Of a stretch of 64,000 bases of DNA, positions 2,714 to 51,936 are shown piece after piece. The stretch's first letter is position 1; the number at the start of each line of letters is the position of its first letter. A program made the translations under genes and the position numbers. A model generated the notes under the pieces. It was not told the DNA's origin, ran no database searches, and saw only the letters and a list, made by a program, of their open reading frames with translations. The stretch spans positions 26,598,001-26,662,000 of the forward strand of contig OZ116699.1 in NCBI GenBank assembly GCA_964199315.1, in the 5' to 3' direction. The stretch comes from Orbicella franksi. Lineage: Eukaryota.

Positions 2714-5700
2714 ATGGGTTTTGGTTTTTTACTTTTAATAATATCATTAGTACCACTATCAAGAGCGAAAGGTAAGCGAAAACTGACAAGAACGTATGTT
2801 TTTACCATTGCATGAGATAGATTATTTCAGTTCTGCATCTGTACCGATACCCTACCTTAAATGGGACGTTACAAAGAGACAAATGATCACATTTTTAAAA
2901 CAGCCTATTAAGCCTTTCTCTGATTCCGTGTCCTGGACTTAAACTGTCAGAAACGAGTTCTGTAAATAGACTCTCAAATACTTAAAGAATAAGCTTAATT
3001 ATGTCCAGGATATAAACTAAATCTGGGATAATGAATCGTGCAGCAGGTTGCGAGTATTTGAGCGGAAACTGAAAAGTTCTCTATGAGCTTATTACAGCAA
3101 TAAAGAGCAAGAAATAGAAAACTTTTTGCGTATCTGCAGCATTTAAGAAACAGTTGAATGTGAATTAACGTACATTTTTACGTTTACAAGCATCCGTGTG
3201 GATGTTGTAATACTTAAGTTATTAGACATATTTCAAGTAGTTTAAATGCATCTATGCCAACGATGTTATGTTAACAACGATGTAAGGAGACTTTCTCAAG
3301 TATCTTTCTCAGTATCTGCAAGGCAACGGACAGTTTTTGTTCACACCAAGTATGTTAAAAGTTTACAAGCTGGCGGTAAAATTACCCGGAGAGTATATTT
3401 AGCAACATAGCTACCAGAAACCCATTATTGTCATAACGATAATTCCAAATACCTAAATGACATTGAGATTGTTTGCATGTGCTTTTAATGCTACTATATA
3501 ACCGAAAGCAACCCTAACTCCAGAATGTTCTTTCCACCCTATTACCTTAACAAAGCTATTATTAACGCTCATCAGTGTTACTAACAAAAGCGCTGCTAAA
3601 CTAACTTTCAGACCTCCGATCTCCGACGTCAGCTGTTGACCGTCGAAGTGCTCCTGATGCTCTTCTCGGCGAGATCTTTAACGATCCAAGCGCAACAAGT
3701 CTAACAAAACTCAACCTCGAGGATAGTGACAGTGACAATGACGACTTTTCCGGTTCGGGTTCGGAACTGTGGTCGGGCTCGGGTGAGTTGCCGAAGCCTT
3801 CCGAAGACAGTAGCACACCCAGTGAAGCCGTGACGACAGACAACCAACAGGGACAAGCGACACAGACGTCGACACAAACAGACGCGACTTCCAATACAAC
3901 ACCAAGCGAAAACACTAACAGCTCTAATAACAGTAGCAGTGCTGACATAAAAGACAATACAAACATCTCAGAAACCCCCGCTGCTACCCCTGAGAGTACT
4001 AACTCAGTGAATTCTTCTACCGCAGCACAAACTGCTCCTCAACAAAGTTCGACGGAAGCGCCCATGACGTCACCAGTGGTGACGCCACAGGGCGCCGACG
4101 CAAAGTTACCCTCTACTGAGGATCAGAGCCAAAATAAAGTTGTGCAGACAGAAGAGAGCGACAAATCTTCCAGTGACCAGTCGACTCCCAATGCTGATTT
4201 TTTCCCTGCACAAACACAAAATCCCTTGGAAAGTATTCCTGATAATCCTGCTGCGGCCCTTGTGGGGCAGCAGTCTCCTGGGTTTGACGACAATTCATTA
4301 TATGACCCCACAATAGTGAAGAAAACAGATATTCCTGTTGCTGCAGATATGTTCTCCAATCCTTTAGGTAAGTCCGCTAAGGATTTGATTACATATCGTG
4401 ATAACTTCTAACTTACTTATCAACGGCAATGCTGAGTGCAACATAAACAGCCCATAAAAGCAAGAAAAGCTTTTTGGAATACGGGATTTTATGTTAAAGT
4501 AATAGACCAGCCTACGCTCTTAATAGAGTTGAAATACGTAATCCTGAGATGAGGTTGAAGGTTTTGTTTTATACGAAGGAGAAGATTTAAAAAAACGGAA
4601 AATAGCTTTTGCTCAAAGTTCGTTCTTTCCAGAACAAAATATGCTGAAGAGTAACCCGCGATGTACCAGCATCCTATCAAGTTAGAGAAGATGTTAAGTA
4701 ACGGCATTGATGAGACACAAGGATCACCTGATCTCTTGGATTGGACTCACTTGAACCTTGAACCTTGAACCTTTAACCTTTAATTTCATCAACAATCTTC
4801 TGGTTTCTGGAATTTGCTATCACTTTACTGACTTTTACTGCGCATGCTTTCTCTTCTCCAGCAGTTAACAATACAATGGACGTTCCAGGAACTGCTCGTT
4901 CAGCAATTCCGCAGGCACCGGTGCTTGCGCCGCAGGCACCAGCCGTTCCTAAGGCAGCCATTCCGTACAAGGGTTCCTTTCCATTACAGCTTCATAAATA
5001 CTCACCATACTCAAAGCTGATGAAAAAGAACATGATCGCAAATACGGGTGAGTAGAATGTTGACTGTTTTGTTTTGGAGAAACTAAACCTAACCGAGTTG
5101 TCCGATCAACTCTGTCAACTAAGCAGTGTTTAGTCCCTCTGCACGACCTGTTCACATCATTGGTAAAAAAATCAGCCATGCTGGGTCACAAGTTAAGCAT
5201 CGGGACATCCAGAACAAAACGAATGCCACGGATCACCATTATGTCTGATGATGTTTGTCCAAAGGGCCCGTTGCTTTCTGTAACAGCATTTAGGTTAACT
5301 GTATGACATGACGTTATTGTCATGCTGCCTTCTAGTGTGACACAATGAGTTTACCTCGCTACATCTGATTCTTTTCGTTACTTCAGGCTTAAACCAGGAG
5401 GCCGCAAAGAAATCTGTGATACCGCTCAATGCCGCAGGGGGTCTGCGGCCGCTGACGGTGAATCTGCCTCAGCAGCAGCAACCACAGCAGCAGCAAGATT
5501 CAACAAACCCTCAAGGCTATCCTCAACCCCAAGCGCCAGCCCTTGATGTCAACCCAGCGCAAATGCCTTTTGGAGACCAAGCCCAGGCCCCTCCTGCTGC
5601 ACAACCTTTTGCCCCAGCCCCTACTACATCACAGTCTCTTGCCCAAGCTCCAGCGGAGGCCCCACTGCAGAGCCCGCAGCAGGCACTCGACCAAGCTCAG

Positions 5701-8700
5701 GGAGATGTTCCCCAGGCTTCGGAACAAGCCTTTGCTCCTCAGGTGGCTGCTCCATCTAATATGCAAATGCCAGGGCCAGAAAATGTCGCGGCTGCATTTC
5801 CAATGAGTAAGAATTTTTTGTATTACTATATAGCAAAATTAAAGTGGGCCAAACCCCGCATTAACAACGAGCAATACTGTTGTGAAACATGTAGATAAAC
5901 CGTCGCTCATTGCTTTATCGATAGCTGTCGTTAAACCCCTAATGATGAAAAGGTAGTTCTCTGGCACTCTTTGCTCAGCCAAGTGAACCAAACAGCACTT
6001 AGATTAAGTACCTACAAAATAACTGAAGGTAATATCTCACTAGTCTTCTTTTTTTCTGCCTTTGTTGAGCATTCGTCGTTAATTCACTTCTGTTTAACAG
6101 ATACAACCATGAATGATGCTATGGCTGGAGCCATACCTCAAGAGACAACAGGAATTCCAGCCCAGGGTCTGCAGGTTGTGCCAGTCTATCAGGGGTTGAA
6201 ACCCAAAAAGCCTGTCATAGAAGAAGGTACATATAGTATCATAGTAGTTTGAAGACCTTACTCAAGATTGCAAAAGTTCTTGAGAAGACTTAGTTAAGCA
6301 AAATAATGTTATGTTCCTCTCTCTTTTTCCCTTTGAAAAAATGAGATGAATAGGGAAAATATTTGTCATTTTAGGCTCGAAGCCGTGCGGGAGAAAATGA
6401 ACTCCCACTCATCACTGAAAGCGTCTCTTAAGATCGCTGTAGGATGAGAACCGGTCAAGATAAAGCGGCCGGCGAAACAGGTTCCAAAATGTTCTTTTGG
6501 ATGCGATTAAGAAAGTGAAACACATGGGATTCCTTGATTTCTAACTACGGAGAGAATCATGGATTATCCATTTAGCTACCACCTACTTTTTTATGCTACT
6601 ATAAAGTGTTAAAAAAATAATAGACGAGAAAGAAAAGACAGTACTTTTACTTTATTAGAAAATGATCAGAAGCCATAAACAGTGGTTGGAATATTTATTG
6701 TTCATTGATTGGCCCATTATCAAAGATTTTCAATAATTACTGATTTTAAGCACTAACGTTATATTTTCCATTTACCGTTACACTAGATCAATGTGATGAT
6801 CAGTTTGATACTTGCCCTGAAATGGCTAAGAATGACTACTGTACTAAATATCCTGATTTAATGAAGATTCAATGCAAGAAGTCATGCAAATTTTGTGGTA
6901 GGAATTTTTTTGTTATAAATATTGTCATATGCAGAGTGCGACATTGAAATATGCGCTTGCCTTATGAAAAATGCAAATTTGCCCATTGTTCGAATTCTTG
7001 GTGAAAATGTGTATACAAGGCCAGTGAGTCTGGAAGTCGTTCAAGGGAGGTCCGGTAGCTTAATGGTTAGCTCGCTGGTGCCCGGATGAACAGTCCGGTT
7101 TTGACAGCTGACCGGGACGGTGTAGGGATTTTAGGTAGGCAAAACACCGGACTCTGTCACTCTCAAGGAATGTAAATGGATGCAAAACACAAACTCTTAG
7201 GGTTACGTGCGATTAACTAGCATCTCATACAGAGGAATTCGAAGCAGTTATGCTTCAGTTCATACTACAGAAGCCTGAATCCAGAGGTGTGGGCCTCCTA
7301 ACATGAATTATTGTTCTTTTGCTGAGTCAGCATAATTTAAAGAAAAAATGCAATGTAATAAGTAATTAGGAAACGACCATTTCAGCGAGAAAAACAACAA
7401 ACTCCATTGCATTTTTTCACCTTTAGAGATGAAGAAGAGAATATCTTCTGGTTCGACTTCTTTTATCTGCTTCATTAGACGGCTTAACTAATGACATTCA
7501 TTCACCATCCTTCCTACACAGAGGTCAAGCACGGTGACGAGTCTGGGTCGGGATATGACGAGTATGATTCAGGTTCAGCAAGTTTGTACTATGCTGATGA
7601 AGCTTCCAGTTCCGGGTCCGGTAACTGGGATGATGATAACGATGAAGGTGAGTGCAGAACTCTGGCTATATTGTATGGGTCTTGTATTGATCAGAACTCA
7701 ACCTTCCTAAAGAAAATGCCCCATATTGTTAAAGGCTGCAAGACGAACAGAAACTTAGAAGAGAGATGGCTGTTACCGAAAGCTTCGGCAAACAGCCTAA
7801 ATCATCGACAGAGTTAGATTCCAAACACACCAGGTGTTTTAGCAAAAAGGTACCGAAACGCACCTTCCATTTGATTTCCGGAAAGAAATTTCCGGAATCT
7901 TTGGCATTTGGAAAGCACCCTATAATTTTTTTCGAAATTGTCTTATTTGCAGATGACGACCCAGAATATAAAAAGTCTGGGATTCCTCAACCAATCCACA
8001 AAGTCCTGATGGCAAAATTTGCAGGAGCTGATTCTGGATCGGCTTCGGGCGCGTCCGGAATGGACGAATCATCAGCTTCAGATGACGACATCGTACAGAC
8101 TTCTGGTAGCGGTGAAGCGGCATCTGGCTCTCAGAAGAAAAATGAAGTCAATGCGATAGCATCAGGATCTGGTGAGGCCGCTGCAGCGCCGGTCACGGCG
8201 TCGCCAACTGTTGGGGCGGCTGAGATTGGCTCCGGGTCTGGAAGTCTGGCTGAAGGTTAGTTTGCATATAATGCATGAAATCTCATAAGAACACATTAAC
8301 TGTTTATTTCTGGTACTCGAAAAATCCATTAAACTCTTTTTCGCAAAATAGCTATTATTGTAGTAAACAGTGTTTTGAGGCGAAAGGGTCAATTCTGCTT
8401 TGTACTGACCTTTTCCCTTTCACCGTGTTTGTGTCTTTTTAAACAACAGCAATATATGGAATAGTTGACTACAGACTCAATCGTACTTTTACAAATCAAC
8501 TTTACTAACAGTTATTCTTGACAAAACAGCATGCTCATTTAAAGCATCTTATTTCAAGATCCTTTGTCGGATCGCATAGCATTGTAGTTATACATGTAAC
8601 GGTGGCTGCTTTTTCAGTTTTTAATACTCTGGCGGAACGATTTGCAAAGATTCCATTTTAAATGAAATGGTTTCTTTTAGTTTCGTTAAACTAGACATAA

Positions 8701-11700
8701 AATACGCGCACAAACTTGTGAGATACTAAACAATAAGTCGGTTTATAAAACAAGGTCACAATTCATCTAAATGCAACCCGACACTCCAGTAGTGGTCCGT
8801 TTTTCGTATTACTGAGATTATGTCAGTTTTCTTCTGACCTCCTAGTCTCTTCCCTTTTATCAATAACAGCAGTATGTTTGCACACCAACTACGACTTGCA
8901 CACTCTACTTGTTACTCTGAAAATTGATTTCCGACACATATGATTGATTACATCAACAGTTTATGTGTATCTCTCGACAACAGATCTTGCAACTGGTACT
9001 GTAAGCAGAGCTAACGAAAAACACAGCTCAATTCCGAGACCACAACCTCCACAAGTATCAGTGTATCCGAAGATTGACCTGAAAGAGATAGCCAAGGCTG
9101 TTAATGTGTATCGAGGTGTTGCGTTAAAGATGCTTGGCGAGGCGCTTGAGGGCGCAGCAGAAGAAAAAGAGCAGGAACTATCAAAGAAGTCTCACATTCC
9201 ACTTCCTCCTGCTACTGCCATCTTACAGAAGATGGGGTTTCCCGTGGGATACGATGATAGTGCCAAGAGGAATATGATTCCAAACATGATGCAAGATCCT
9301 AATATGATGATGGCTCCCAATAATGGAATGATGGGGTTCGTCAACAATGGATACGCATATAATTATCCACAACCTACTGGTAACGAACCTTTGGCCGACT
9401 TTTATGGCCAGTACCAGCAGCAACCAAACTTTGCGAGGTCGGGCATAATGGCGACACCCGAAGAAGAAGAAGCAGAAATACAGCAAAACGATGACGAGGG
9501 AGCCGCACAGGATGAGCAGCCCGAAGAGATTCAGCCAATTCAACAAGAAAATGAGCCGGCCAAACAGCAAGATAACGCAACAGAGACGGCGAAAGAGGTA
9601 GAGAATCAGGTAAAGAAAATAAGTAATGATTGTTTAATTGATGCAGGTAAAGTGGTATTGACTATTCGGTTAATACTGGTAAACTGTATTAAACGCCCAG
9701 TTTAGTGAGACAGTGGCTGCTCATCTGATACGGGTTAAGTTGTATGACTGTTTCTCAAAAACAGGTCCTGTGAGTTGGACATTTTAGTTGATATAATTTA
9801 GTAAAATGTTCTTAACTGTTCTGTTTAGTGGACATAAAAAGACCTGAAAACCATAACCTAATCAACTGCGACGAATGTAATGTATATGAGATCGGAAAAT
9901 ATGTAAGAGTGTGCTCTCCGTCGTCAAAAAATTATGTTCGTGAATTTCTTCTTTATATTTTGGCAGGATAAACCAGAGGCAGCACAAAACATGACTACCG
10001 ACGACAAGGACAAAAAGAACAAAATTGTCGACCCATTTGAATACGTTCGAAACATGGGCACCGGAGCATCGATGGAGCCTATTCGCTCGAAGACCGCCTC
10101 TAATTTAATATCCTCACATTCAGATCCTCTTATCTTATGGAAGAATTCTCAAATACAAGCTCTCGCTACCTTAGCAAAAAAGAAAAGCGATATACCGCAG
10201 CCCGGTAAGAAGAATCAATGGAAAAGAATCAAACTTGGTTTACCTGCCTAGTTAACCATTTTTAAATGGTTTCCTTTGAAAGGTCATGTAATCGATGCCT
10301 AATTTTTCGTTGCAATGTAGCTGATCATAGCTACATTTCAAGTCATTCGGCGTGTTCAGTTGTATCACTCAGGCGCAAAGGGCGGCAACAAGGCTCTTCC
10401 ATTCTAACTGGTCTTTTGTGGCCCTCTCGGTTGTCCTCCAGCATAAAGCAGTTGTATACTACCTACCAAATGTCCAACAGACAGAAGCAGTTTTAGAACG
10501 ATATTTAAAAAATCCTTTGATTAATTTTTCCGTAGGAAGTGAACCTGCAACGCCTGCAGAAACCAGCAATCAAGGAGCTTTCCAGTTCCCTCAGCAGCAG
10601 TTTAGATCTGACATTCCAGAGCAGAATATCACGATGAGCGGTCTGCCAGATATGACAGGACAAGCCTTCCCAGAATCGGCACCAGTCTTCCCGCAGTACA
10701 CACCCCAAAGTGATTATCTGACACAAACCCCTGGCGATGATCTCGCTGCAAGTGAGTACATCAGTGGTTACATGCTTAATTGGAAGGTCATTATGAAACG
10801 TTTCGAAGAATTACCGTTCCCATTGGACAACGATGAGTAATTATTTATCCAATGAACACAAATCACATTTAACAGTAGCAATGCTTACCATTAACTCTTT
10901 GATAGTCTCCAAACTTCACCCAAAACCACTTAAGAGTCAAAGGAATCCTTGAAATCTAACTTTGAAAGAGAGTGCCAATTAAAACTTAAAGAAAAGGATA
11001 CCCCGCTTCTACATAGTTCTTTGCACACCCGTTTTTTCTTGGTGCACGTGATTCACGTTTCATAAATTTGGCTAAATTCTGCTTTCATCAATTCGTTATG
11101 AACAGGAAGCCAAATCGTACAAAGCCAGGCACCACAACAGCAACAACAAGGTATGTGACTCTGTATTATTTCTTTCTATTCATATTTTCAAGTTTTTAAA
11201 AAGGCTTACGGATTGCACTTATTTGACAAAAAGTACTCGAGACAAAAGTTGAATTTCAGCTTATCTTAATTTCCTAAAAGAAAAAAAAAAAAAAAAAAAA
11301 CGTTACGTCTTCTACTTATCTAATCCACGACTGACTGGTACGAGTTTGCCAGACTGGACATTAAATGTGTTCTCAACTGTTGATAAGTAGGATAAAGTGA
11401 CTTCTTCGATCGACAGTAAAAGCGTGCTCAGAAAAAAACAAACAAACAACATCAAGTCATGACTTACACGCGGCTCCGCTTTTAAAATAATGTTCTTTTC
11501 TACAATAAATTCAAACCGCTTTGGTCCTTAATCTGCTCTTAATTCTATTGCGGGCGCTAAGACGCTAAGCAAAGTAAACCTAACGCGATTAATTTTCACT
11601 GCCGAAATTGCTACTTTGGCTGGTCGATGCTTCAGTGCTACTCTCAGAAAGCAATAGCTGAAGGCACCATTACCACTGTTGACACTACCACCATCACTAC

Positions 11701-12386
11701 AACAACATAAGCAGTTGCTGTCATTTTTCTTTGTTATTCCTTTTACTGCTTGGTGTTATTCAGTCTGTTTTCTACTTCTACACGTCTCTATTTTCCTGTT
11801 ATTTCACTGTGACGACTCATACCACACTGGAACTGAAAGTCAATAACATTTCACAAAACCTGCCCTCATACACTTTATAATATGTAATCTTTATCCCTTA
11901 GGAGTAATTTCATTTTTCGTAACTTTTCCTCTCCTTTTGCTACTTTTTGTCTACACTCAGCATTTTCACTGTTTTTTTTTTTTGTTTTTTTTAATTTAAA
12001 TTTGCCTTCTGCCTCTCAAACATAACTTTTAACTTTAAACTTTGGCGCCGACCGCTTTCGTTGCCGTCAATGAAACAAATCCTACTTCAAATAAATAAAT
12101 TTACCTGAAATGTGACCACTAAATTAAATTTCTTACACAGTGACATACCGATTACCATTCAAAGTTCGCCTCGTATACTGTAATCTTGGCGAAAGGAGAG
12201 CTTACATACTCAAGAAATAAAAATCTGATATTATTTAAGATATCCTCGGAGATACCCTTAGCAATGGCAGCATGAATGAATCGGAGCCTGCACGTTTCAG
12301 ACCAGCGTCATCATAAAGAGAAAATGCCGCTAACAACGGATGAAGATGAGCCTTCTGACGTTTACAAAACCGCGTCAAAAGCGTAA
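2714..12386 (+). CDS. Gene A: secreted low-complexity, Ser-Gly/acidic (proteoglycan-like) protein with one ShKT domain, ~1100 aa
   Basis: The exon chain stays in frame with GT-AG sites: 2714-2771 (signal peptide MGFGFLLLIISLVPLSRA), 3612-4367, 4865(or 4862)-5047, 5387-5806, 6101-6226, 6787-6897, 7522-7647, 7953-8255, 8984-9609, 9967-10204, 10536-10751, 11106-11150, and a tentative terminal exon 12301-12386 (DQRHHKEKMPLTTDEDEPSDVYKTASKA*). It explains ORFs 3788, 5416, 5971, 7491, 7766, 8944, 9934 and 10352. The terminal exon is less certain. Confidence 0.75.
6787..6897 (+). CDS. ShKT domain exon of Gene A
   Basis: Symmetric phase-1 exon encoding DQCDDQFDTCPEMAKNDYCTKYPDLMKIQCKKSCKFC. Six Cys with the terminal C-x3-C-x2-C pattern typical of ShKT. 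Confidence 0.9.
7045..7296 (+). mobile_element. Degenerate tRNA-derived SINE
   Basis: tRNA-like head (GGGAGGTCCGGTAGCTTAATGGTTAG...) and a body homologous to the reverse complement of the better-preserved copy at 35891-36180. Confidence 0.65.
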
Positions 12387-12879
12387 CGATTCGGAGAAGT
12401 TCCTTATCCTTCTTATCAACAAACTAGCGATAAAAAGAAAGTTTGCATTTCGCGTTTTGTTTCAAAAGAACAACGCTTCTAACATCAGATTTGCATTTTT
12501 CTAACAACCAATAGGCGATCAGGAAAGCAGCCTGAGAGAGTTAAGAAGTTACTTTCCTGAGGACGAGTAACTATGGGTCGATATGGAGTTAGCCTTAAGG
12601 TGGCTGAGAATAAAAACAAGCTATGCTAGCAATCCCGCCGTCAACGATACAGTATACGACGGACTTGTTTCCACACCAACACAACTTGACGAGATCAACA
12701 GTTTCTTTACATTATCAACACTAACAGTCATATCAAATAAGTGCAAAGAAAGACTACGGGAATAGGAAATAGAACTTACAGTCTCGAAATTATAATGTAA
12801 ATTAATTGTTCATGATTTAACCTTGTTACTTCTCCCTTTTTATAAAGTAAAATAAAGGAAGCGATATTTCCTGAACCCT

Positions 12880-13085
12880 TTTCTTTGAAGTGGCATTTAC
12901 TTTAAGAGCCACTGTCACATGGCTTTTTGCCTCCCTTTGAAAACGAGTTTTGTTATAAAACATTTCATATATGTGAGTGTTACAGGTTCCTTTTCGTGTA
13001 AATCAAACTCATTTTTTATGAAATGTTTTGGACCAAACTTTGGTTTTAAACATAGGCATAACTTAACTTAAAACCGGTTTATTTT
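12880..13085. mobile_element. Degenerate non-autonomous DNA element (MITE-like)
   Basis: Shares blocks (TTTGAAAACGAG, TCAAAC..ATTTT..ATGAAA, GGTTTTAAAC) with the element at 20257-20425. Confidence 0.4.
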
Positions 13086-25300: not shown

Positions 25301-28300
25301 TTGGAAACAGGCAGCCGCTCCAAGTTCGGGTTCCTACTCCTGGTCCATCGGTCGGAGTTGGAAGATTCACTGGATCTGCTGTTCAATTTAACCCAACGTT
25401 AAATAACCTAACTAACACTGGGAATCCCCGAATTAATTCACTTAAATCAACTGACGTGTCCCAGACTCCTAGAACTGGGACTAATTCAATAATTAATAGT
25501 TATAATACAGTCCCGGTCAAGCCCCAGGAACCAATTTTACCCTATTTAACAAATGTAAATCCACCAAAGGATAACGATGAGTTCCAAAGACAGCGTCTGG
25601 CGCCTAATCAGATAGCTAACGAATTGACATCAAATGTAAACCTACAAACGCAAAGCCTGAGGTTTAATCAAGCAGCAGCTAAACCAAACAGTAATGGACT
25701 TTCCCAGATACAGAATCTGGGTCTTAACGTGGTTGCTAATCAACCTAGAAACGGTACAGAATTTGATGATGGTAATCCAGTAACTAGCCAACCTCCATAT
25801 AACAGTGAGTTTAACTTACCTAACTTTCCTTCTCCTAACCAGCAGTATGTTAACCCATATCTTAACCCAGGTGAAATGATACAGAGCTACGTTGGTAAAC
25901 CTCCCTTGACTCCCCCTCTTGAGCATGCGTACCCTATGAGTCATGAGCATGAGGCTCTTCTTCCGCCATTAAATCACCAGCAACTTCCGCCTCTCAACCA
26001 CAATGACTTGGTAGCTACCGAAACCTCCAGGTATACCGGAAGTGACGTTAATGCATTCCCGAACCAAGGTAAGAATTAATTTTATCATGACCAATCAAGA
26101 TGGCAGAGTTCGATGCATTAATTCCTTTTTAACCATTTAACCGATGCTGGAATGCTTTGTTGTCATTCTTAAATGAAATAAGTTGTTGTTGCTGCCAATG
26201 TGGCCCAAGTTGTGTCTCGCGAAGTTGTTATGTCTCGTGTAATGGGTTAACATGTCAATGCTATGGGGAAAATATTATCACTAAACTCTTGGAGAAATAA
26301 TGCAGTGATATCATAATGTGTAAGATAATGTTGTTTAACAGGAGTATGTCACAATAACAACAAATCACTAAAACAGCATCAGCTTAGGACTTATTCCAAA
26401 AGAGAGCATTTACCAAGTGCAGAAAGTTGCTACTAACCTCCCGTTAAGAGCCAATCAATCCAGGTTTTATAGTTATCTGAACGTTTTAAAAATGGTAGAC
26501 ATGAACGACAAACGTCATTTAACCGAACAAGACATTTCACACGATAACCTTTTGAAAACAGGTCAAGCAAGGTCCAATCCTGCGCCACCAATATATCCCT
26601 TCACCATCCCCCCTGAAGGACAGCAGGAGAACCAAGGTTACCATGGTTACCAAGGAAGCGAAAACAACAACGATGCCATAAAGGTACTTTGTCATTGTTA
26701 CTTGTGTAGACCTCACATTTTATGTTGATATATAATTAGTTAGTTTGTTTTCTAATCATTTGTAGTTTGAAACAAATACGTTCATTTTTAAGCCTAACCC
26801 TTTTTCAGTGTCTCAGGCCTCCATTTCAGACGCCTCTATTCTCAAACGAGGAAGGAATCGTGCTTTATCTATTTTTATTTTTTTAACTGGAAAGCTATCA
26901 TTTAACAACAAGAATCCATACCGTTATCACATAACTAGGTAACATTAACTCGTTGTTTCTTATTTTTCATCAAGACTAGTTCCCAGGCCTCTGCTCGAGG
27001 ATCTCTGCCATCAGCACAGTCTCCCTATTATCCACTCCCTAAATCAGCTAACCAGCAACAGGTATGATAACGGTGGAAAAATAATTGCTTAAGGAGACTG
27101 GGGCGGTGGAAAGAGGGGAACAAGAGGAGTATTAGACCACAAATTAAGGAATAACATTTAACTTAATCTGTAAATTAGACTAACAGGAAATCACACTATT
27201 GTGTATCTTTAAACTCCAAATTTAATCAGCTTGTTTTGGGTTGATTTGCCTCCTGAATGTTATAAGCAACCAAATACTAACCCTGTCTATAGAAAAATAG
27301 ATTAAATAATGTTCAGTGACATTCATAACAATAATTTGTTTTAATAGACTATTTTACAGTTGTCTGCTCAGTGACCTGGCCTTTGTATGGCAGCGAGGCT
27401 AGAGTTGACCTTGTTTTGATACAGACCTCACTGCTTTTGTCATGTAAATGCACCTAGTTAGCATCAGAACGACTTGTTTTGCACAACAAAAGCAGTGATG
27501 TCTGTATCAAAACAAGGTCAACTCTAGCCTCGCTGCCATACAAAGGCCAGGTCACCGAGCAGACAACTGTAAAATGGTCTATTCTTTGAAGTAAATGTCG
27601 ACTTTCTCATAATCACAATCACAATCATAATCATAAGCATAACCATAACCATAACCATAACCATAACCATAAGCCTAATCATAATCATAATCATAATCGT
27701 AATCATAATCGTAACATTATCCACTACAATCAGTCAACCCTTTTTATCAAAAAGTGGTGTAAAGTTTACGTTGAGGTTTACTCTCCTCCGCGCGAAACTA
27801 CGTCAAGAAACACGGTTATGTAAAGAACCATGTGCTCTTATATGATTTTTTATTCGAATTTGGTTTCTGGAGGTTTCAGCGTTCTTGGCGATTCTATTTC
27901 TGCGCATCAAAGAGCATTCTGATAGTGTAATCTGTATTGGGAATGGTATTAAATTACTGTGATGTCAACAGCCTGCGGTTACTCGTCAATGGTTTCCAGA
28001 GGGCGGACAACCTTATCCAATCCCATTGCCACCAGAAGGAATTCAGCACGTTCCAATAGACACAGACGACACTGTAAGATCAACTTAAAAACAATCTTAG
28101 TTTTAGAGCGTAAAGGCACACCAAGAGTCTTCAAAAACAAGAAATCGTTTGGGATAGACTACCACTGTTTTTGTAAAAGCAGTAGTTTTCCTTTCCTATT
28201 TCGTAAGAGACTATCATTGAACCAATTCGTTTAGTCGTTTGAGAACTAAGCAGTGGACGAACAGTCCCACCTGCTACTGATGGTACTCTAAGCCATCGAA

Positions 28301-43300: not shown

Positions 43301-46300
43301 TTTCTTTTCGCATGTGAGCCTGCTGTTATCTCAATGTAGGGACATGTACTGTTTACCTTTTGTTTTTCTTATTTGCTTTCTAGATAAATATAGTTGACAA
43401 ATCTTAAACGTCATTCGTTACCATTTATCACACATGAAAAACCTCGATAAGGACCCAATAGGTTAATGAGATGCTAAGTATGTTTTAGTAGTAAATTTTG
43501 TGACCGTATGCTGAGAAACATGCTTGCTGATATCGCTTGTTACCTAGAAACCAGAATCTGACCTACAAAATAGCATTCATCTGAGAACAAAAGACAAAAA
43601 ATATCAAAAAAAAATAAACTGCAGTATTTACCTTTTCGATTGGCGGCAGAAGTGGGGATTCAAAGCTGCAAAGGTTCTTCAATATGAATTAATCCTTGCA
43701 GCCATTAAATTACAAGTTTGGTTGTTACCGGAGAAAATAGATCATTTCACTCAGAACGAAAAGAGTGGCGCCGTCACATTTCAAGAGAAATGACCCGATC
43801 TGTAATTTACTTAGTGCAGTCTCATGTTTGCTAGCGAATATGTGTTTTCCTTAAGAGAAAGACAATCAGTAAGTCTAGAAAAAGGTTTTCCGAAGAAATA
43901 TCTTAGTAAGTTAAAAACGGTAGTTCTATATTACAACAGAAACGTTAATATTTGTCCATTAAACTGAAATTTCAAAAGTTTTTTTTTAGTTCACGCGAGA
44001 TGAAATTGTATTTGATATCTTTTGCCAAACCTTGCAACGATATTCAGGTAAATATCACTTTGACGAGAATATCATTGATGAGGAGTTTCGAAGATGTGAG
44101 ATGCAAGGGTAATTTGGACCCTTCAGCTGTGCAAACGTCGGCAATTAAGCAATTTCGGCTAGTAAACACCATTTTGTGAAACTGGATAATATTTTGGAAT
44201 ATGCGAAAATGGATTATCATAATTAGTATCGTAATATTTAATGTGAAGAAGCTATCAGATCCACTCATTTTACAAATAATTAGTTCAGTATTGGTTGACG
44301 GGTTACCATGCTATATAGGTCGTCGAAATAGCAATGACTAGGGAATAATATTGGATGTTGTTTTTTCTGAAGATTCCCGGAACAGAAGTCTGAACGTATT
44401 CACCTGAAGAAAGGTAAATATTATTACCTCGAGGCATATCAGAAGGCAGATAAGCTGGCTGACTGTGCATCAGTGGCAGTCGAACTTCCTAGTGGTCATT
44501 TTGAGGGACCAATCAAAAGAGTACATTTGAGCTGGCGGTTACCAGGTGAGTGACAGTAGACTAGGAAGATGAATATCAAGGCATAATCTATCGATCAGGA
44601 AACATCGCAACATATATCGTGCATTATCAATAATGAAAGAAAGAGGAATGATAAACTAAAGGCTATGAATGATATCAAAGAAAAATATTTTGCCAAGATA
44701 AAAGGGGAAAGCGTTAATGCTCTGTTTATGGTGTTCGAAAGATGGATGTCATTTAACCTAAAAAGCTTTCGATTAGTGGACAGTGAATGGTGAGAGAACA
44801 TTTGCACCAGTAATTAAATGCAAACAAAAATCCCTTGACGTTCTCAAATTTCAATACATTTTAAACCAACCTTAAATAAGCCCGGGACAAAGCGGCACGG
44901 GACTTTTTAGATGCGAAAGAATGTAATGTGAATAAAAAGAAATGACCAAACGAAAAACATATTGTGGTGAAAATCGCAGTGTGTAATCTGGTTATTGTAA
45001 GTTCTTATTTATGTGAATAAATGTTTCCGCAGATGGAAGAACTGGTCCTGGGCCATCTTCAGAGGAAGAAGGTTTGTACTCATTTCGCATGTGAGGATGG
45101 CATCTTGTTAAAAATTAAAAAATTAAATCACTTTATTGAGTGTCGAGGTGTTTAGCACTACTGTACTAATTGGGGACACTGAAATAAGCAAACAAATATT
45201 GAAAATTGAACATAAACTTGTTAAAAATCCCAGTTGGTGATAGGCTGACCAGCTGGCTATTTACTAATCGTGGAGTAGTTGAATCTAGCGCCACCAAACA
45301 CAGACCCATCATTCATAAAACCGATCATTTGCTTAATCTGGTGTCAGTTTTCTAGGTATGAAGTAGCTCTGGCCAGGAGATGACGTTGTCAGTCAAAATG
45401 TGTATGATTGTTTGCCACTGGCTCGAACATTTTTCAGTATTCGACACCGTCACGGTTATTCCGAATGATGTGAATATAAAGGATTGAACGACTTCTCGCG
45501 TGGCATTTTTATATATATCATTCAGTCGGACTAATGGAATCGTTATCAAGAGAGCTCTCTTTTTACAAGTCATCTTAGAATTGGACAACCTTACGACACT
45601 AAGAGGAGAGCAATTAAGTGAAAAAAGATAGTAAGAGCTGTCTCAGTGCTGTTTGTCGTTATTTTTGCAGCTATACCCAAGCCAGTTGGTTTGTATCCAC
45701 TAAACAAAGCATTTGGTGCTAAGGATGCAGGACCTAACCACGAAAATGGAGTACTCAGTAATGTGGACCTCAGCACGGGCCCTGATGGTAAGGGTTATTC
45801 TTCAACTTAATTATAGTGTTATTGGTAACAATGGTCCAAGCAGCTGTGACTTTGATGAATGTTTGGTCGTGTTCGATATACACCTGGATTATCCCAAGAG
45901 TAGAACTGTAACAGTTTGAATAAAGATGTGCAGTCCTTTTGAGCAGTACACAAGGCTGCAGCAAGGAAAGGTTTGATACCAACGGACTGTTAGTTACTTC
46001 CAGTGCTGTCTAAGATGTGTTTTCTTGTTGTGAAACTAAACGAGCAAGCTTACTATTGAAAGGTTTTTGCGCTTTTTTAATTTCTTCCATCATTAGGTCA
46101 CATACTGAACCCGAAACTAACGAGCATAAATCGTTGTTTTCTTGATATTTACATAATTGTGTCAAAGGAGCTACGTCACGGTTTGCGTATCTTTGAAATT
46201 TATGCCTCAGTTTTTCAAGTTCGTCGTTTGTAATGAACGAGGATCTTCTCCATCCTTAGCTATCCTTGTTCCTTTATGGTTTACTGTTATATCTTTGGTA

Positions 46301-49300
46301 GTTTTCTTATTTAGTAAACTACTATTTTCAGGTTTCCTTCAATTTAAATGTAATTTTGTGCGAGTCCAAAATAACTCAAAATACTGTGACTGAGCCCCTT
46401 TAAGAGTTCTACTTACTGTTAAACAGTTTAATATGTAACCATTTTCAAAGGCAAAATTTTCAAGAGTTGATATTGACAATACACTCTTCTTGCTGAACAG
46501 ACAATGAAGATGAAGCCTTCGAATTCAAAGGTACGGCAGATTCATTTGTGGAGATTCCCAATGACGGCAAGCTGGACACACAGAACTCCATGACAATCCT
46601 CGCTAACGTCTACCCCACCGGTAGTGGGGGACCCATCTTAAATTACAAAACACATGGTTGGGGAGTCCATCTTTGGCAGTTTGAGTCCACTGAGCTATTT
46701 GTGCGATTTGTGCATCGTAATGGAGTTTTCCATAAGCCAATTGCGTCGAGGGTGTTACAGGTACGCGGTCGCAATCTTGCATCTTTCCACAATTTGGGGA
46801 TACTGCAGGGTCACTTTTCTTTCCCTGAAGTTCTTTACGCGTATAAAGTTTTTGAAGCTCAGAGTGCTAAAGGGCCAAGACCATGAGTAAATCTCTAGTC
46901 TCAAAAAAGTGCACAGGCAGTTGTTTTATTATTATTTCAAAAAACTGATTAGGATTAATTTCGATTCCTGATGGCTGCGATGAAAAGAGAAGTTACAAGA
47001 CCTGAGATGCTACAAAATGATTCGTAAAAGCTCGTAACCAGCTGCGCAATGAAGCACATAATTTCTTCCCGGTCTTAAGAAAAAAAAAGAGTTTAAGAAT
47101 GTCTTCGTTTCAGGAGCTTTGTTTAAAGATGTCAAACAATCATAAGCGCAAAATGAACCTGATATGCATACACAGTAACAAAAACCGCTGATAAGATGAC
47201 TAATGATAAATATATTGCCTCTGCGACTCTACGTTTATAAATTGCGTTTATATGCTTTTTCTCTACTGTGAACGCAAGAGACATGCTGAATGAGATCTTT
47301 TGTTTTTTCCTACAAGCTGAACGAGTGGAATCAGGTCGGTGCAACATACGACAACACTACTGGTGTAGCGCAACTTTGGCACAATGGTAAGATGGTAAAG
47401 AGTCGTAATATCGGTCAGATTAAACTTGCTACCCAGTATCCAATCAGGATCGGTGCCAGGGATGGAGACGAGAGGAGGTTCACTGGAAAGATTTCATGCT
47501 TACAAATTTACAACAAAGCATTGGACGAGCAACAGATTGGAAACCTTAAGAGTTGTCCTGTCAAAGGTATGACACCCATAACTTTACTCATTTGTCATTA
47601 AGACAGCTAAATGTTTGGAAAAGGTAGTACCTAAAAAGCTTTATGTACAAGAAATTCTTGCGACTTTTTGATCCCGAATGAGCGTGAAAGCTGAGAGTGA
47701 AGAATAATGAGAGAAGCAGGCTATGATCAAATTTAAGATAAGATTAGAAGTTTTCCCCTTTTTTCAATGTTGGAGCAGCCATTTTTTTCCTGCAAGAACT
47801 GCTGTAATCTCCATCATGATGTACCTATAAATTAATCGTCTATAACGCCTATATATTTCCCAGGCCAGGATTTTTCTATAATCCAACCAAGAATAATCCT
47901 TACAACGATTTTAATTAATCCTACTAATAAGCTTGAAATTCAACGCCAAATAACACAGAACATTTGTTTTTTGTTTCCGCACGCAGCAAAGATCTTAAAT
48001 GATGACGAGCTGGACTCGGGTGATGGCTCAGCCTCAGGAGACTGGGACGTTCATGATTTAGATTGTGAGTTAATTTCCTGTATAATGCATAAACAGACAT
48101 TCTTATCTCGCCTCTCGTTTCAGTGACGTCGTTGTTCTTTTTTGAGCGTTCCTCATTACCTAAACCGTTGGTGCGTCTAAAAGACCAACCTGGAACTAGA
48201 CAACAGTTAATTCCGGGCCGAAAACGTGACAACATGACTTTAATACGCCGTTATGTTGTCACGTAAAAAACCACCATTATACAGCTCTCCAAATATTCTT
48301 TCTAATTAATTTGCTGTGAAAAGGTCTTCTGTGGTTTCTCGCTAACCTTTGTCTTGTTAATCCTTTTTGCTAGCCCTTAATAGTTATTTTGGATAGCCCG
48401 TAAGCCCTTTTAACTTTTTGGATTATTTAGTTAAAATTTTGTAGTAAAAGTGGGATATAAAGAAAGTTGTTGTTGTTGTGCAGAATCAATAGCTTCTCAG
48501 TTACATTTTATTTGCAGCAAGTGCCGTGGATATTTCACACAATGCCGGTAAATATGACAAGGACGAAGAGGCTGATGACGAGATTCAGGGTTAGTAACAA
48601 AAGCAATAAAGCAAGGTCGACTGGAAAGATCACTTGGATATATTATTCAAGAGAATAGCTTTCACTACTTTGAGTGATCTTACCACACAAAAAGACTTGT
48701 CTTAAAACATAATTAAACATAATGGCATTAAGTAGCAGAAGACAGATCTAGAGGATACTAGAGGTGGCTTTGGCCTCTAGAGCCACGGACAATTATAGAA
48801 ATGGACTGTCAGGAACGTTACTTAATTTCATCAGTTAGATCAACAGCGAGCCAAGTCTTGAGTCAATGTATATGATATTTTCTCTTAATATGAAATATTT
48901 CATTAACATTTTTTGGCGTTAAGTTATAGCCAGAAATATACATTTACTCGCCAAGATTGAAGCAGGTCATAAAAAGCGAATTTGAAGGAGGGTTTCACTG
49001 GGCAGCGATCTCATCCTTTTAACTACTTGAGAAAGTTGCAAAACTTGCAGGGAGTACTGAAAAACAGCGCACAAGGGCAGTAACTAAGAAGAGACGGACT
49101 GAGTATAACCTACCTCTTCACGAAAGAACCTTATTATACAACATGTAAACTGAGTTAATAACATTCTTTTTATATCTTTACAGGATCAGAGTCCACTTCA
49201 GGTAAGAGTTATCTTAACCGTCTCTAAGACGAGGATCGCAGGAGATTTAAAAGACTCTTGCGCAGAGAGTCAGCCTATCAAAACACCATTAATAGAAAAT

Positions 49301-51936
49301 ACCCAGACAAAAATAAAATTTTGTTTAGACTTAATTATAAATGAGAGTTAAAAAAAATTGCAGGGAACAAGTGCGACCCAGAACCATGTGAAAATGGCGC
49401 CAAGTGCATCCGGGATAATAAGAGGATGGATGGCTACCGATGCAAATGCACTTCTGATTTTACAGGACGGAACTGTCAAGGTAATTGCCTGCATACTTTT
49501 AAATTTTACTGAAAGCATTACAACATTTAAAACCTTGAAAAAGGCGCCCTCTTTTGAATTCTCCAAAAAAGCAGTTTCCTCTCCCCTCCGCTAAAAGAAT
49601 CACGTGCACAACAAGAAAAACATGTCAGATGTTCAGAGAAAATATACCGAAACAAATTTGTGGATCTTCGAATCTTTAATTTTAAAGTGAGTTCCATTGT
49701 AAAGATAAGTAATGAATGGTTGTCCAAAGTGTTAACGTAATTTAACAAGAGTTTGAGTAACCTGGGCAATACCTTTTATTGAGGCGTTCTTTGTAAAAGA
49801 ACGCCTCAATTGCACGCCTGTATTGTAAAGAAGAGCATACAAGTCGTGAGATAATATTATTGAAAGAGGAATACAAACTAAGGTGTTGATTTCGGTGTTT
49901 AATTCCAGTTTCCAAGCCAGATGCTGAGAATCCTATCGTAAAGAAGGCAAAAATTCCTAAACCTGAACTGAAGATCGGAAATGAGGATTATCAAAAGAAT
50001 GCCAGTGCCTTAAATCTGATTGGTGAGTTTTCCATTCCTTTTTTTAAACTTTGAAGTTGGGAAATCCGAGATGGCATTGCGAAATAAAGGTATTTGACTA
50101 TGGAATTTTCGAGGGAACAACAAACGTTGTACACATGCGCAACTGAGGTAACGAGAAAAAAACTGTGGTGAGTCTTCTCTTGCAGATTTTAGGGAAAAAA
50201 CATTGGAAGCCATGTTGCCCCGAAAATGGTCCAACAAGCGAGTTCGAGATGAAACATACCCCTGATTTCTTCTCGATTTTAAAGTCGCTAATTGTGTTTA
50301 TATTTTAGTCAAATAATAGTGAAGTTAATAATGTCAGTAGTATTCTATGTAGTTCTCACAATTCTAGCAAATAAAGATTAATAAAGCCTTTTCTTTAAAT
50401 TCAAACAACAGAAAACCTACCAGAAGAAAAGAAAGAAGACGTGCTCTTACTTTTCCAAAAGGTCGGCTGTTACAAGGACGAGATTGTAAAACATGATCTG
50501 CCGGACAGAGCCACAGTCAAATCCGTCACTCAGGAAGACTGCGTACGATCATGCGCACTGGAAGAAAAAGGATACTCATACTTTGGACTTCAGGACGCTG
50601 ACAAGTGTTTTTGCGGGCATCGCTATGGAAAGTATGGCAAAGCAGATGAGGCTCTCTGTAACATGCCGTGCAAGGGAAATGACAAAGAGAACTGTGGTGG
50701 TAATTCTACAAATATGGTTTACTTCTTTGGTTTAGGTAAGTTTTTATTGCATCAAAAAACTGCGGCGTGGTTAGTCAACCGAAATTAATCTTATAGGGAC
50801 ACCTCCAGGGAGCTTTACCACGAAATAATCCCCAGTTTAAAAAGTGACAATGCCCCATCAATAAGACATAATGGTTTTGCCATTTTTGTTTTCTGAGCCA
50901 GTGATGATGTTCGAGTCATTTTCTGAGTCATTTCAATTTCGAGTTTCCACTCCAGCATGATACAAACTGTTTCATAGTTTTGAAATTTTCTAAGGCTCAC
51001 GTTTTTGCTGGCATGTCGTGTAACCTAACTATTCTATCTTCAGGTACTAATTACACTATAACTACTTCAACTGGTGACATCGATGGAGCTGACACAGACG
51101 CTAAGGTATACATAACCTTATATGGGGAGAAAGGCGATTCGGGATTCAGAAAACTGGACACTAAACATTTTACAAGGGGAAAGTAAGTTGATATCTCGTT
51201 TGAATGACCACAGTACAGAATAATGTGTTCATGTTTTATTGGTCATGCATTTTATATGATGTTGTTTAATCTCTCTTCTTCTTAGAAATGATACAAACAC
51301 TCTCGTATTACCTGACCTCGGTAAGCTGAGGCAAGTTAGAATTCTACACGATAACTCAGGATCAACTCCAAGCTGGTTCCTGGAAAAGGTGCGAGATTAC
51401 ACTTGTGTGGAATTCATAATTTATTCAAGAGGCCATTTCTCTGAAGAAGCAGAGAGCTGTGCTGAGACCAGAAATGCTTTTTGCACCTTCAATAGCCAAT
51501 TTACTCTATGAGACGTGCCTGCGGGGAATCGCGGTAGTTGTATTCATCATCTTAGACTGGATATTTGTTTCGATGAATACAACTACCATGATTCCATGCA
51601 GGCGCGTCTAATAGAGGGAATGGGCGATTGTTTGGATTCGAGCCAGACCACATGAATCTCATTGGTGAATCAAAGCCACGGTCATAGATATTCCAAGAAA
51701 CTAGGATATGATTGAAAAGAACCAGAAGAAAAATCCCCTCGAGTAATAGTGTCCGAACCTTTTCAATGGATCAGTCAGTCAGTTAATGACTTATTCATAC
51801 ACGTAGTGCTAAGGAGCTCGAAAGCTATTTGACAAAATTTCGTGTGCAAAAGGATACTAAACGATGTGTAATAAGAGGGAAAAAATACTAAATACTAAGA
51901 GATTAAATCTAATATGATTTATTTATTTAGTTAGTC

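Follow-up and report, generated by a model that had tools for sequence, protein, structure and literature searches.

This study concerns a short peptide motif, a basic residue followed by a polar residue, any residue and Ile-Pro, which recurs in a gene of Orbicella franksi. The window analyzed is a stretch of 64,000 nucleotides (assembly GCA_964199315.1, contig OZ116699.1, positions 26,598,001 to 26,662,000) that is free of N runs. Its + strand carries gene A (2714-11150), in which the motif was found at 14 sites, and, further downstream, gene B. An earlier reading of the letters, below called the original prediction, had listed the motif in both genes and interpreted it as a processing or sorting code shared by the two neighbours. 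We show that the motif is far more frequent in gene A than composition predicts and is kept at orthologous sites in other cnidarians, and we tentatively propose that it marks sites of endoproteolytic maturation.

Exon structure of gene A

Twelve exons of gene A join to a stop-free frame of 1069 codons, a lower bound for the length of the protein. RNA data from three studies (two transcript-contig runs and one raw-read run) were aligned over positions 4780-10779 and delivered eight GT..AG joints as well as informative loose read ends, while a fourth run gave no alignments on this region. Exon borders were shifted onto canonical splice dinucleotides, and all introns but one are in phase 1. Every gene A motif of the original prediction falls within an RNA-confirmed exon, with RSQIV straddling the junction of exons 11 and 12.

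Exon 1 (2714-2771) would supply the start codon and a hydrophobic predicted signal peptide. It is the sole upstream candidate combining an ATG and a hydrophobic segment with an in-phase donor (phase 1, G/GTAAGC), and a transcript contig extending about 77 nucleotides upstream of exon 2 is compatible with it; an RNA joint for exon 1 was not seen in the three runs. Exon 2 (3612-4367) encodes an acidic, disordered segment rich in Ser, Thr and Asn with Ser-Gly clusters of the DDFSGSGSE type, an RR site (3638-3655) and site 1, KKTDIP (4319-4336). Support for exon 2 comes from loose RNA read ends at 4863 that match 4336-4365.

RNA joints define exons 3 to 10. Exon 3 (4865-5047) contains RSAIP (4897-4911), KAAIP (4951-4965) and KKNMIA (5023-5040), flanking a conserved GSFPLQLHK, and exon 4 (5387-5806) contains KKSVIP (5407-5424) followed by a Gln/Pro/Ala-rich stretch. 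The terminal part of exon 5 (6101-6226) encodes the dibasic KKPVIE (6205-6222), which has no Pro after the Ile. Exon 6 (6787-6897) corresponds to an ShK domain with six Cys. Exon 7 (7522-7647) is acidic with Ser-Gly and Tyr (GYDEYD) and is devoid of the motif. In exon 8 (7953-8255), KKSGIP (7970-7987) follows DDDPEY and is accompanied by KKNEVN (8135-8152) and Ser-Gly clusters. Exon 9 (8984-9609) harbors KHSSIP (site 7, 9019-9036), KKSHIP (9184-9201), KRNMIP (9265-9282) and RSGIMA (9436-9453), which bound a long helix and two short modules, all of them conserved. Likewise, KKNKIV (10012-10029) and KKSDIP (10180-10197) in exon 10 (9967-10204) bound the conserved module DPFEYVRNMG...LILWKN.

Exon 11 (10536-10751), supported by RNA joints and loose ends, contains RSDIP (10604-10618), and its last base opens the Arg codon of RSQIV. 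This motif is completed in exon 12 (11106-11150; RSQIV at 10751 plus 11106-11119), where it is followed by a Gln run. The start of exon 12 rests on a loose-end consensus of 35 reads that matches from 11107. Because exon 12 ends at a good phase-1 GT donor, it does not fix the 3′ end of the gene. A candidate terminal exon ending at 12386 is phase-compatible, and conservation gave no confirmation of it.

At the junction of exons 3 and 4 (5046-5388), the contig of run X1 displays a GT..GG joint with one extra A, whereas runs X3 and X23 support a canonical GT..AG joint one to two bases away. The odd joint is probably due to a strain or species difference or to an assembly quirk. Fixed differences between RNA and window were observed at 9225 and 9295 (X23/X3) and at 10675 (all three runs).

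Protein features of gene A

Pfam identified the ShK domain (PF01549, E 3.7e-07, 31 bits against a cutoff of 20.9) and nothing besides it in gene A. The domain is kept in four orthologous loci (L005, L001, L007 and L013). The protein contains 140 acidic (D+E) against 69 basic residues (K+R), is rich in A, S, P and Q, with 99 Gln residues, and exhibits 22 Ser-Gly dipeptides, many of them within D/E-rich runs. An RR-S site lies eleven residues past the predicted signal cleavage. Between the motifs no hydrophobic or membrane span was found; ShK and acidic Ser-Gly clusters lie on both sides. Judged by the predicted signal peptide and the ShK domain, the product of gene A is likely a secreted, strongly acidic, largely disordered protein of proteoglycan- or granin-like character. 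The conserved KK of KKPVIE lies seven residues upstream of the ShK domain. Cleavage at the basic sites, should it occur, could set free an ShK-like peptide that carries a short acidic extension at its N-terminus.

Occurrence and constraint of the motif

All ten motif positions given by the original prediction translate on the + strand to the peptides named there, and the items that it had left unnumbered were located as well. In its wide form, [KR]-[STNA]-x-I-[PAVM], the motif accounts for the 14 sites of gene A: KKTDIP, RSAIP, KAAIP, KKNMIA, KKSVIP, KKSGIP, KHSSIP, KKSHIP, KRNMIP, RSGIMA, KKNKIV, KKSDIP, RSDIP and RSQIV. Nine of them are dibasic, four carry a single Arg and one carries Lys-His. 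The single-Arg sites have A, F, T or Q upstream and no basic residue at P4 or P6. At 10 of the 14 sites Ile/Val-Pro follows S/N/T-x, and x-Pro often comes next, which gives the extended consensus KK[S/N]xIPxP. Moreover, the protein has 11 dibasic runs apart from those of the ShK domain, and 10 of them continue with one residue, x and Ile/Val. The distribution is uneven, with four sites in exon 9, three in exon 3, two in exon 10 and none in exons 1, 6 and 7; the earlier estimate of roughly one site per exon is thus loose.

The recurrence in gene A proved to be a real excess over composition. The strict form [KR][STN]xIP occurs eight times in the mature protein; 3000 composition-preserving shuffles gave a mean of 0.06 and a maximum of two, and none reached eight. 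For [KR][STN]xI[PAV], 11 matches stand against 0.15 expected in the same shuffles, and for [ST]xIP cores nine against 0.6, all nine with K or R within two positions upstream. Given the 13 Ile-Pro dipeptides of the protein, about 0.19 are predicted to have a basic residue at position -3 and S, T or N at -2 (Ile being position 0), compared with the eight seen. In a six-frame translation of the whole window, 8 of 12 strict matches lie inside the 6.3 kb of gene A. Chance or low-complexity composition, which might be considered because Ile-Pro and Lys-Lys are each enriched in gene A, is ruled out by these numbers. A recent internal duplication of exons is ruled out too, as the motif-bearing exons are mutually dissimilar apart from the motif.

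Codons differ between sites: Ile is encoded by ATT, ATC or ATA, Pro by CCT, CCG or CCA, Ser by both TCN and AGY, and the Lys and Arg codons vary as well. The constraint is therefore one of protein sequence rather than of a nucleotide element, and an origin as splicing enhancer or other nucleotide-level signal can be discarded.

The first 105 residues of exon 9 were modeled with AlphaFold2 on the basis of a 15-row alignment. The model predicts one long helix at residues 32-68, whose best block reaches a predicted local distance difference test score (pLDDT) of 90, and puts the three motifs into the less confident, non-helical flanks (mean pLDDT 68). In exons 3, 9 and 10, motifs bracket short conserved modules.

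Conservation in other cnidarians

A profile search (HMMER) with exon 9 yielded 14 matches in a library of protein representatives. Thirteen are true relatives, all exon-sized open reading frames (ORFs) called on genomic or metagenomic contigs. Apart from P0009, a bacterial repeat protein rejected as spurious, searches of the protein libraries yielded only such exon-sized ORFs and neither full-length annotated relatives nor a named family for gene A. We compared orthologous loci exon by exon, namely L005 and L013 (long contigs), L012, L001 and L007, together with the fragments P0001-P0034. L001 is about 52% identical in exon 9. L007 is much more distant (30-50% identity) and still displays the same exon order with its own signal-peptide exon, predicted like that of gene A, and its own ShK exon. 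Furthermore, its downstream neighbour matches that in the window (Lectin_C, Laminin_G and PA14).

Motif sites are kept orthologously in these five loci and in many exon fragments, while the x position and the flanking residues change freely. The original prediction had described the flanks as unconserved, and for gene A both this description and the conservation of the motif itself hold site by site. Lack of conservation in orthologues had been named as grounds for refutation, and gene A passes this test. KKTDIP of exon 2 appears as KKTDIP or KKNEVP. In exon 3, RSAIP corresponds to RSTIP, RSAIP or RSNIP, and KKNMIA to KKNIIG, KKNMIA or KKFFIA. KKSVIP (exon 4) is represented by KKDSIP and KKSQIP, and the KK of KKPVIE (exon 5) is kept in L005 and L001. 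Orthologues of KKSGIP (exon 8) are KKSGIP (twice), KKARIP, KKSDVP and RKSGIP. In exon 9, site 7 (KHSSIP) reads KHSSIP, KHSRIH, KKNTIP, KKNSIP, KKDSIP, KKDEIP or KYSEIP; KKSHIP reads KKSRIP, RKSHIP, KKSQIP, KRTNIP or KKSNIP; KRNMIP reads KRNMVP, KRDMIP, RKSFIP or RRNMIP; and RSGIMA is replaced by RSDIM, RSEIM, RSDIS or RSDIF. KKNKIV of exon 10 corresponds to KKDKIV, KKSEIV, KKSEIA or KKSEIY, and KKSDIP to KKSTIP, KKSSIP, KKNTIP or KRNSIP. Finally, RSDIP (exon 11) is found as RSDIP (twice) and RSEIP.

S, N, T and D interchange at position -2 of orthologous sites, as do I and V at position 0. The basic classes are stable: dibasic sites stay dibasic, and all orthologues seen have Arg-Ser, never Lys, at the four single-basic sites. 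Single sites have been lost in a few distant fragments (P0012 and P0032 at site 7). The persistence of sites in orthologues of 30-50% identity whose flanks diverge is a further argument against chance.

Distribution of the motif in the genome

Three whole-genome pattern searches were performed in the 497-Mb assembly with the eight-residue consensus KK-[S/T/N]-x-I-P-x-P. Among the matches listed, which in one search represent 100 of 212 places, no coding cluster other than the gene A locus was found. In addition, no paralogues of exons 9 and 10 were found in the genome, and as far as the assembly tells, gene A is a single-copy gene. Use of the motif thus appears confined to one single-copy gene family, and a general processing or sorting code is rejected at the stringency of the eight-residue consensus.

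Many of the matches listed in the first search come from one repeated element. The search was dominated by the 23-mer AAAAAAAGCCAAATCCCGCATCC, which recurs dozens of times on many contigs (e.g. C1:4217874, C2:3222418 and C5:4147953) and presumably belongs to a dispersed repeat family. Paired matches on C4 near 7.79 Mb and on C3 near 3.16 Mb were discarded, as they have no plausible coding frame.

Gene B and its relation to gene A

When the pattern is loosened until it covers all eight items that the original prediction listed for gene B, its density in any frame of that span is 3.5 per kb on the + strand and 2.2 per kb on the - strand, so that eight items in 32 kb are no excess. The strict form was found twice on the + strand and once on the - strand of the gene B span. 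Three of the items (RS[DG]LLP) lie in a triplicated exon and thus represent one event. KSTVP is KNSVP in one relative and missing in another. In contrast to these chance-level items, KNAIP (18182-18196) is kept as KN[ASTF][IV]P in ten orthologous exon ORFs and is the only gene B item that is demonstrably conserved.

KNAIP is located in the first recognizable exon of gene B (18123-18324, phase 1-1, deduced from splice sites), where it precedes GSFPLSLRK...KKDELYK. The exons of the two genes had been regarded as otherwise unrelated. However, this exon is collinear with exon 3 of gene A: basic-x-AIP, about 20 residues, GSFPLxLxK and then KK. The blastp E-value of the pair is only 0.22; MAFFT put the L013 copy of the 18.1-kb exon into the exon 3 alignment. 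On this sequence resemblance, the 18.1-kb exon is likely either a paralogue of exon 3 or an additional exon of gene A itself. As KNAIP is conserved in an exon resembling exon 3, its sharing would reflect descent, or A and B would form one transcription unit. The phase of the exon allows splicing onto exon 12 of gene A, and no convincing second signal-peptide exon was found between 11.2 and 18.1 kb. Two blocks in this interval (11303-11499 and 12034-12904) are 65-80% identical to three other species and contain stops in every frame. They could be the 3′ untranslated region (UTR) of gene A, the 5′UTR or promoter of gene B, or regulatory DNA within an intron. Rfam gave no RNA family match anywhere in the window.

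The downstream domains of gene B (30272-51183, + strand) comprise Lectin_C (twice), PA14/GLEYA, Laminin_G_3/pentraxin-like, an EGF-like exon (49345-49509), WSC and PLAT. Since the order Lectin_C, Laminin_G_3, PA14 also follows the gene A orthologue in the distant L007, the neighbourhood is syntenic. Between the EGF-like and the WSC exon, translation of a putative linker exon gives KKAKIP(KP) (49941-49958, + strand), which fits the extended consensus. An exon of the type ...NNPAI(S/T)..VPQP.QM.P..SRS(D/G)LLPG is present in triplicate on the + strand (19998-20258, 20814-21092 and 21981-22172). This local tandem triplication includes duplicated flanking intron sequence, as 20628-20801 resembles 21785-21982. 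Long open exons at 23483-26076 (+) contain about a dozen LPPL(N/M/H)H repeats, which are conserved in L012 and L013.

Interpretation of the motif

We tentatively favour the reading that the motif marks endoproteolytic maturation sites following the published cnidarian rule of a basic cut and an X-Pro guard; it is quite possible, and far from certain. By this rule, KR, RR or R marks the cut in a cnidarian precursor, and hydrophilic or acidic residues (S/T/D/E) preceding the final N-terminus are trimmed by unspecific aminopeptidases up to a protecting X-P or X-P-P group (PMC7523074). The reference list of the same paper includes a title on processing at Ser and Asn in Hydra. In gene A, KK/KR pairs or single Arg would be the cleavage determinant for enzymes of the prohormone-convertase type, the polar residue and x would become the first residues of the product and might be trimmed, and Ile-Pro(-x-Pro) would guard the new N-terminus against aminopeptidases. 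The precursor would be cut at [K/R]-[K/R or none]-[S/N/T]-x-[I/V]-P(-x-P) units and so be divided into modules. Since cut, product start and guard each map onto one part of the motif, every constrained position receives a role. The predicted signal peptides of gene A and L007, the ShK domain and the RR-S site after the signal peptide provide a suitable secretory context.

Several observations weigh against this reading. Ile-Pro at P3′/P4′ and the fixed spacing of two residues are as conserved as the basic residues, so that convertase specificity or unspecific trimming is insufficient as an explanation. Monobasic convertase sites usually need a basic residue at P4 or P6, which the four single-Arg sites do not have. 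At least six related sequences have Lys-His at site 7 and still continue with Ser-x-Ile-Pro. No Gly precedes any of the basic sites (none at P2/P3), so the products would not be amidated neuropeptides. In addition, four sites have no Pro (IA, IM and twice IV), and most of the sequence between sites is not conserved, in contrast to the peptides in true polyprotein precursors of hormones. The proposal of cleavage by proprotein convertases therefore stands in part: it fits the published rules for cnidarian processing (PMC7523074) and the predicted signal peptide, but single Arg residues, Lys-His and the equal conservation of Ile-Pro do not follow the plain convertase rule.

The strongest alternative is an uncut multivalent docking motif. 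Disordered linkers would present the 14 copies of KK[S/N]xIPxP to a partner in the lumen or outside the cell, for instance a chaperone, a sorting receptor, a protein of the matrix or an enzyme that modifies the product, and binding would resemble that of EB1 and SxIP, with a small polar cap, Ile-Pro in a hydrophobic pocket and electrostatic contacts of the basic residues. Six to eight consecutive constrained positions (basic, polar, free, Ile/Val, Pro, free, Pro) are typical of a linear binding motif, and the S/N/T/D interchange at -2 suits a turn or cap residue better than a modified acceptor. Retention of Ser-x-Ile-Pro at the Lys-His site and the placement of the motifs in non-helical, low-confidence linkers of the model are readily explained by docking, and the coupling of nearly all dibasic runs to Ile suggests that the whole unit is selected. 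However, the data suggest no partner, and use of the motif by one gene family in the genome would be unusual for a general receptor; four sites, moreover, have no Pro. The single-basic sites are always Arg-Ser. Convertase specificity expects Arg, whereas a purely electrostatic contact does not need it and binding would tolerate Lys. Furthermore, the motifs lie at module boundaries, as cleavage sites do. The Arg-only monobasic rule and the boundary placement fit cleavage better than binding, and we consider docking possible but rather unlikely.

A bolder version leaves open whether the sites are cut. KK[S/N]xIPxP might be a new recognition motif of the secretory pathway, conserved across anthozoans, with a dedicated reader that would be a maturation protease specific for this sequence or else a docking domain in the lumen or outside the cell. 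About 14 uses of it would serve to cut or tether one cnidarian-specific granin-/proteoglycan-like protein, and on the lumenal side it would look like cytosolic SxIP. We regard this proposal as doubtful.

Post-translational modification or a structural turn is improbable. Ser/Thr with Pro at +3 resembles the preference of mucin-type O-glycosylation, the protein combines many Gln with Lys pairs, as transglutaminase or lysyl oxidase cross-linking of Lys might require, hydroxylation of Pro or Lys can be imagined, and the polar residues at -2 are classical turn formers. On the other hand, Asn or Asp replaces Ser at orthologous sites, so that an acceptor hydroxyl is not needed, four sites have no Pro, and neither the invariant Ile nor the Arg-only monobasic class is explained.

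That gene A encodes a microtubule plus-end tracking protein (+TIP) which binds EB1 through SxIP is almost certainly wrong. The letters agree strikingly with the general definition of that motif, as basic residues stand before nine [ST]xIP cores and x-Pro comes after many of them, but the signal peptides predicted in the window and in L007, and ShK and acidic Ser-Gly clusters on both sides without a membrane span, would put the motifs into the lumen or outside the cell, beyond EB1. EB1-binding SxIP motifs are not known to have acidic residues inside or adjoining, whereas in gene A the x of KKTDIP, KKSDIP and RSDIP is Asp, flanks can be acidic (DDDPEY before KKSGIP, for example), and acidic residues are twice as many as basic ones. 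Chance, composition or exon duplication, excluded above for gene A, is equally negligible there; the gene B items other than KNAIP are at chance level.

Comparison with known systems

A close published parallel is provided by the cnidarian preprohormones described by Grimmelikhuijzen and co-workers (PMC7523074). Like the precursor proposed for gene A, they are secretory, with cuts at KR, RR or single R, hydrophilic residues next and protection by X-Pro or X-Pro-Pro. Gene A differs from them by the lack of Gly and hence of amidation, by dissimilar stretches of 20-250 residues compared with products of about six, by the fixed spacing and an X that is always Ile or Val, and by a proteoglycan-like ShK carrier in place of a peptide-repeat precursor. 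At the level of single peptides, GLWamide-type products start with X-P-x-P, to which I-P-x-P of gene A is similar.

In overall architecture gene A is reminiscent of the granins (chromogranins and secretogranins), which are likewise acidic, disordered and secretory and combine numerous conserved dibasic sites with short amphipathic helices and with Tyr in an acidic context. The C-terminal inhibitory peptide of 7B2 contains Lys-Lys followed by Ser-Val-Pro, akin to the gene A sites. Yet granins have neither ShK nor an Ile-Pro rule, and no sequence homology to gene A was found; the likeness is functional and architectural only. Syndecan-like and other small proteoglycan cores have a signal peptide and acidic D/E-x-SGSG clusters, as predicted for gene A, and their disordered ectodomain likewise contains basic sites sensitive to proteases. 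Unlike these, gene A possesses ShK, and no transmembrane or conserved cytoplasmic domain was found in its product as encoded up to exon 12.

The SxIP motif of +TIPs, which binds the EBH domain of EB1, has a nearly identical consensus of basic residues, Ser/Thr, x, Ile/Leu and Pro, with x-Pro often next, and also resides in disordered regions, sometimes in several copies. In contrast to this cytosolic motif, the copies in gene A are predicted to be lumenal or extracellular, contain or adjoin acidic residues and may have Asn or Asp instead of Ser. Among proteases, the astacin family prefers Lys/Arg at P1/P2, a small P1′ residue and Pro on the prime side, as known from substrates of crayfish astacin, and many cnidarian astacins carry ShK. 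Gene A shares the basic pair, the small residue and a downstream Pro, which is at P2′/P3′ in astacin substrates but at P4′ in gene A. Site-1 protease (SKI-1), with its R-x-hydrophobic-[LKTF] sites, shares the basic residue three before an aliphatic one. As a substrate of this enzyme gene A was rejected, since Pro would occupy P1′ and the P2 residue, one of D, A, G, S, H, M, K and Q, does not meet the demand for a hydrophobic one.

In the literature we found neither an extracellular SxIP-type motif nor a coral ShK proteoglycan. The original claim that the motif had not been described accordingly stands, as far as these literature searches go, for the fixed hexa- to octapeptide unit but not for its components: basic processing with X-Pro guards is known from cnidarian neuropeptide precursors, and the letters match cytosolic SxIP. 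What appears to be new is a fixed, conserved hexa- to octapeptide unit and its use in a large proteoglycan-like protein with an ShK domain. Whether or not the sites are cut, the claim is a narrow one, as it concerns one single-copy gene family and no general sorting code. Public coral RNA runs show gene A to be well expressed. If the sites are not cut, gene A would be a clean case of a conserved multivalent extracellular linear motif without a known reader; such motifs are rare and easily studied with peptides. If they are cut, gene A would be a cnidarian counterpart of granin-type precursors, and the combination of basic cut and X-Pro guard, an unusual logic of this phylum, would extend from small neuropeptides to a large matrix- or proteoglycan-like ShK protein.

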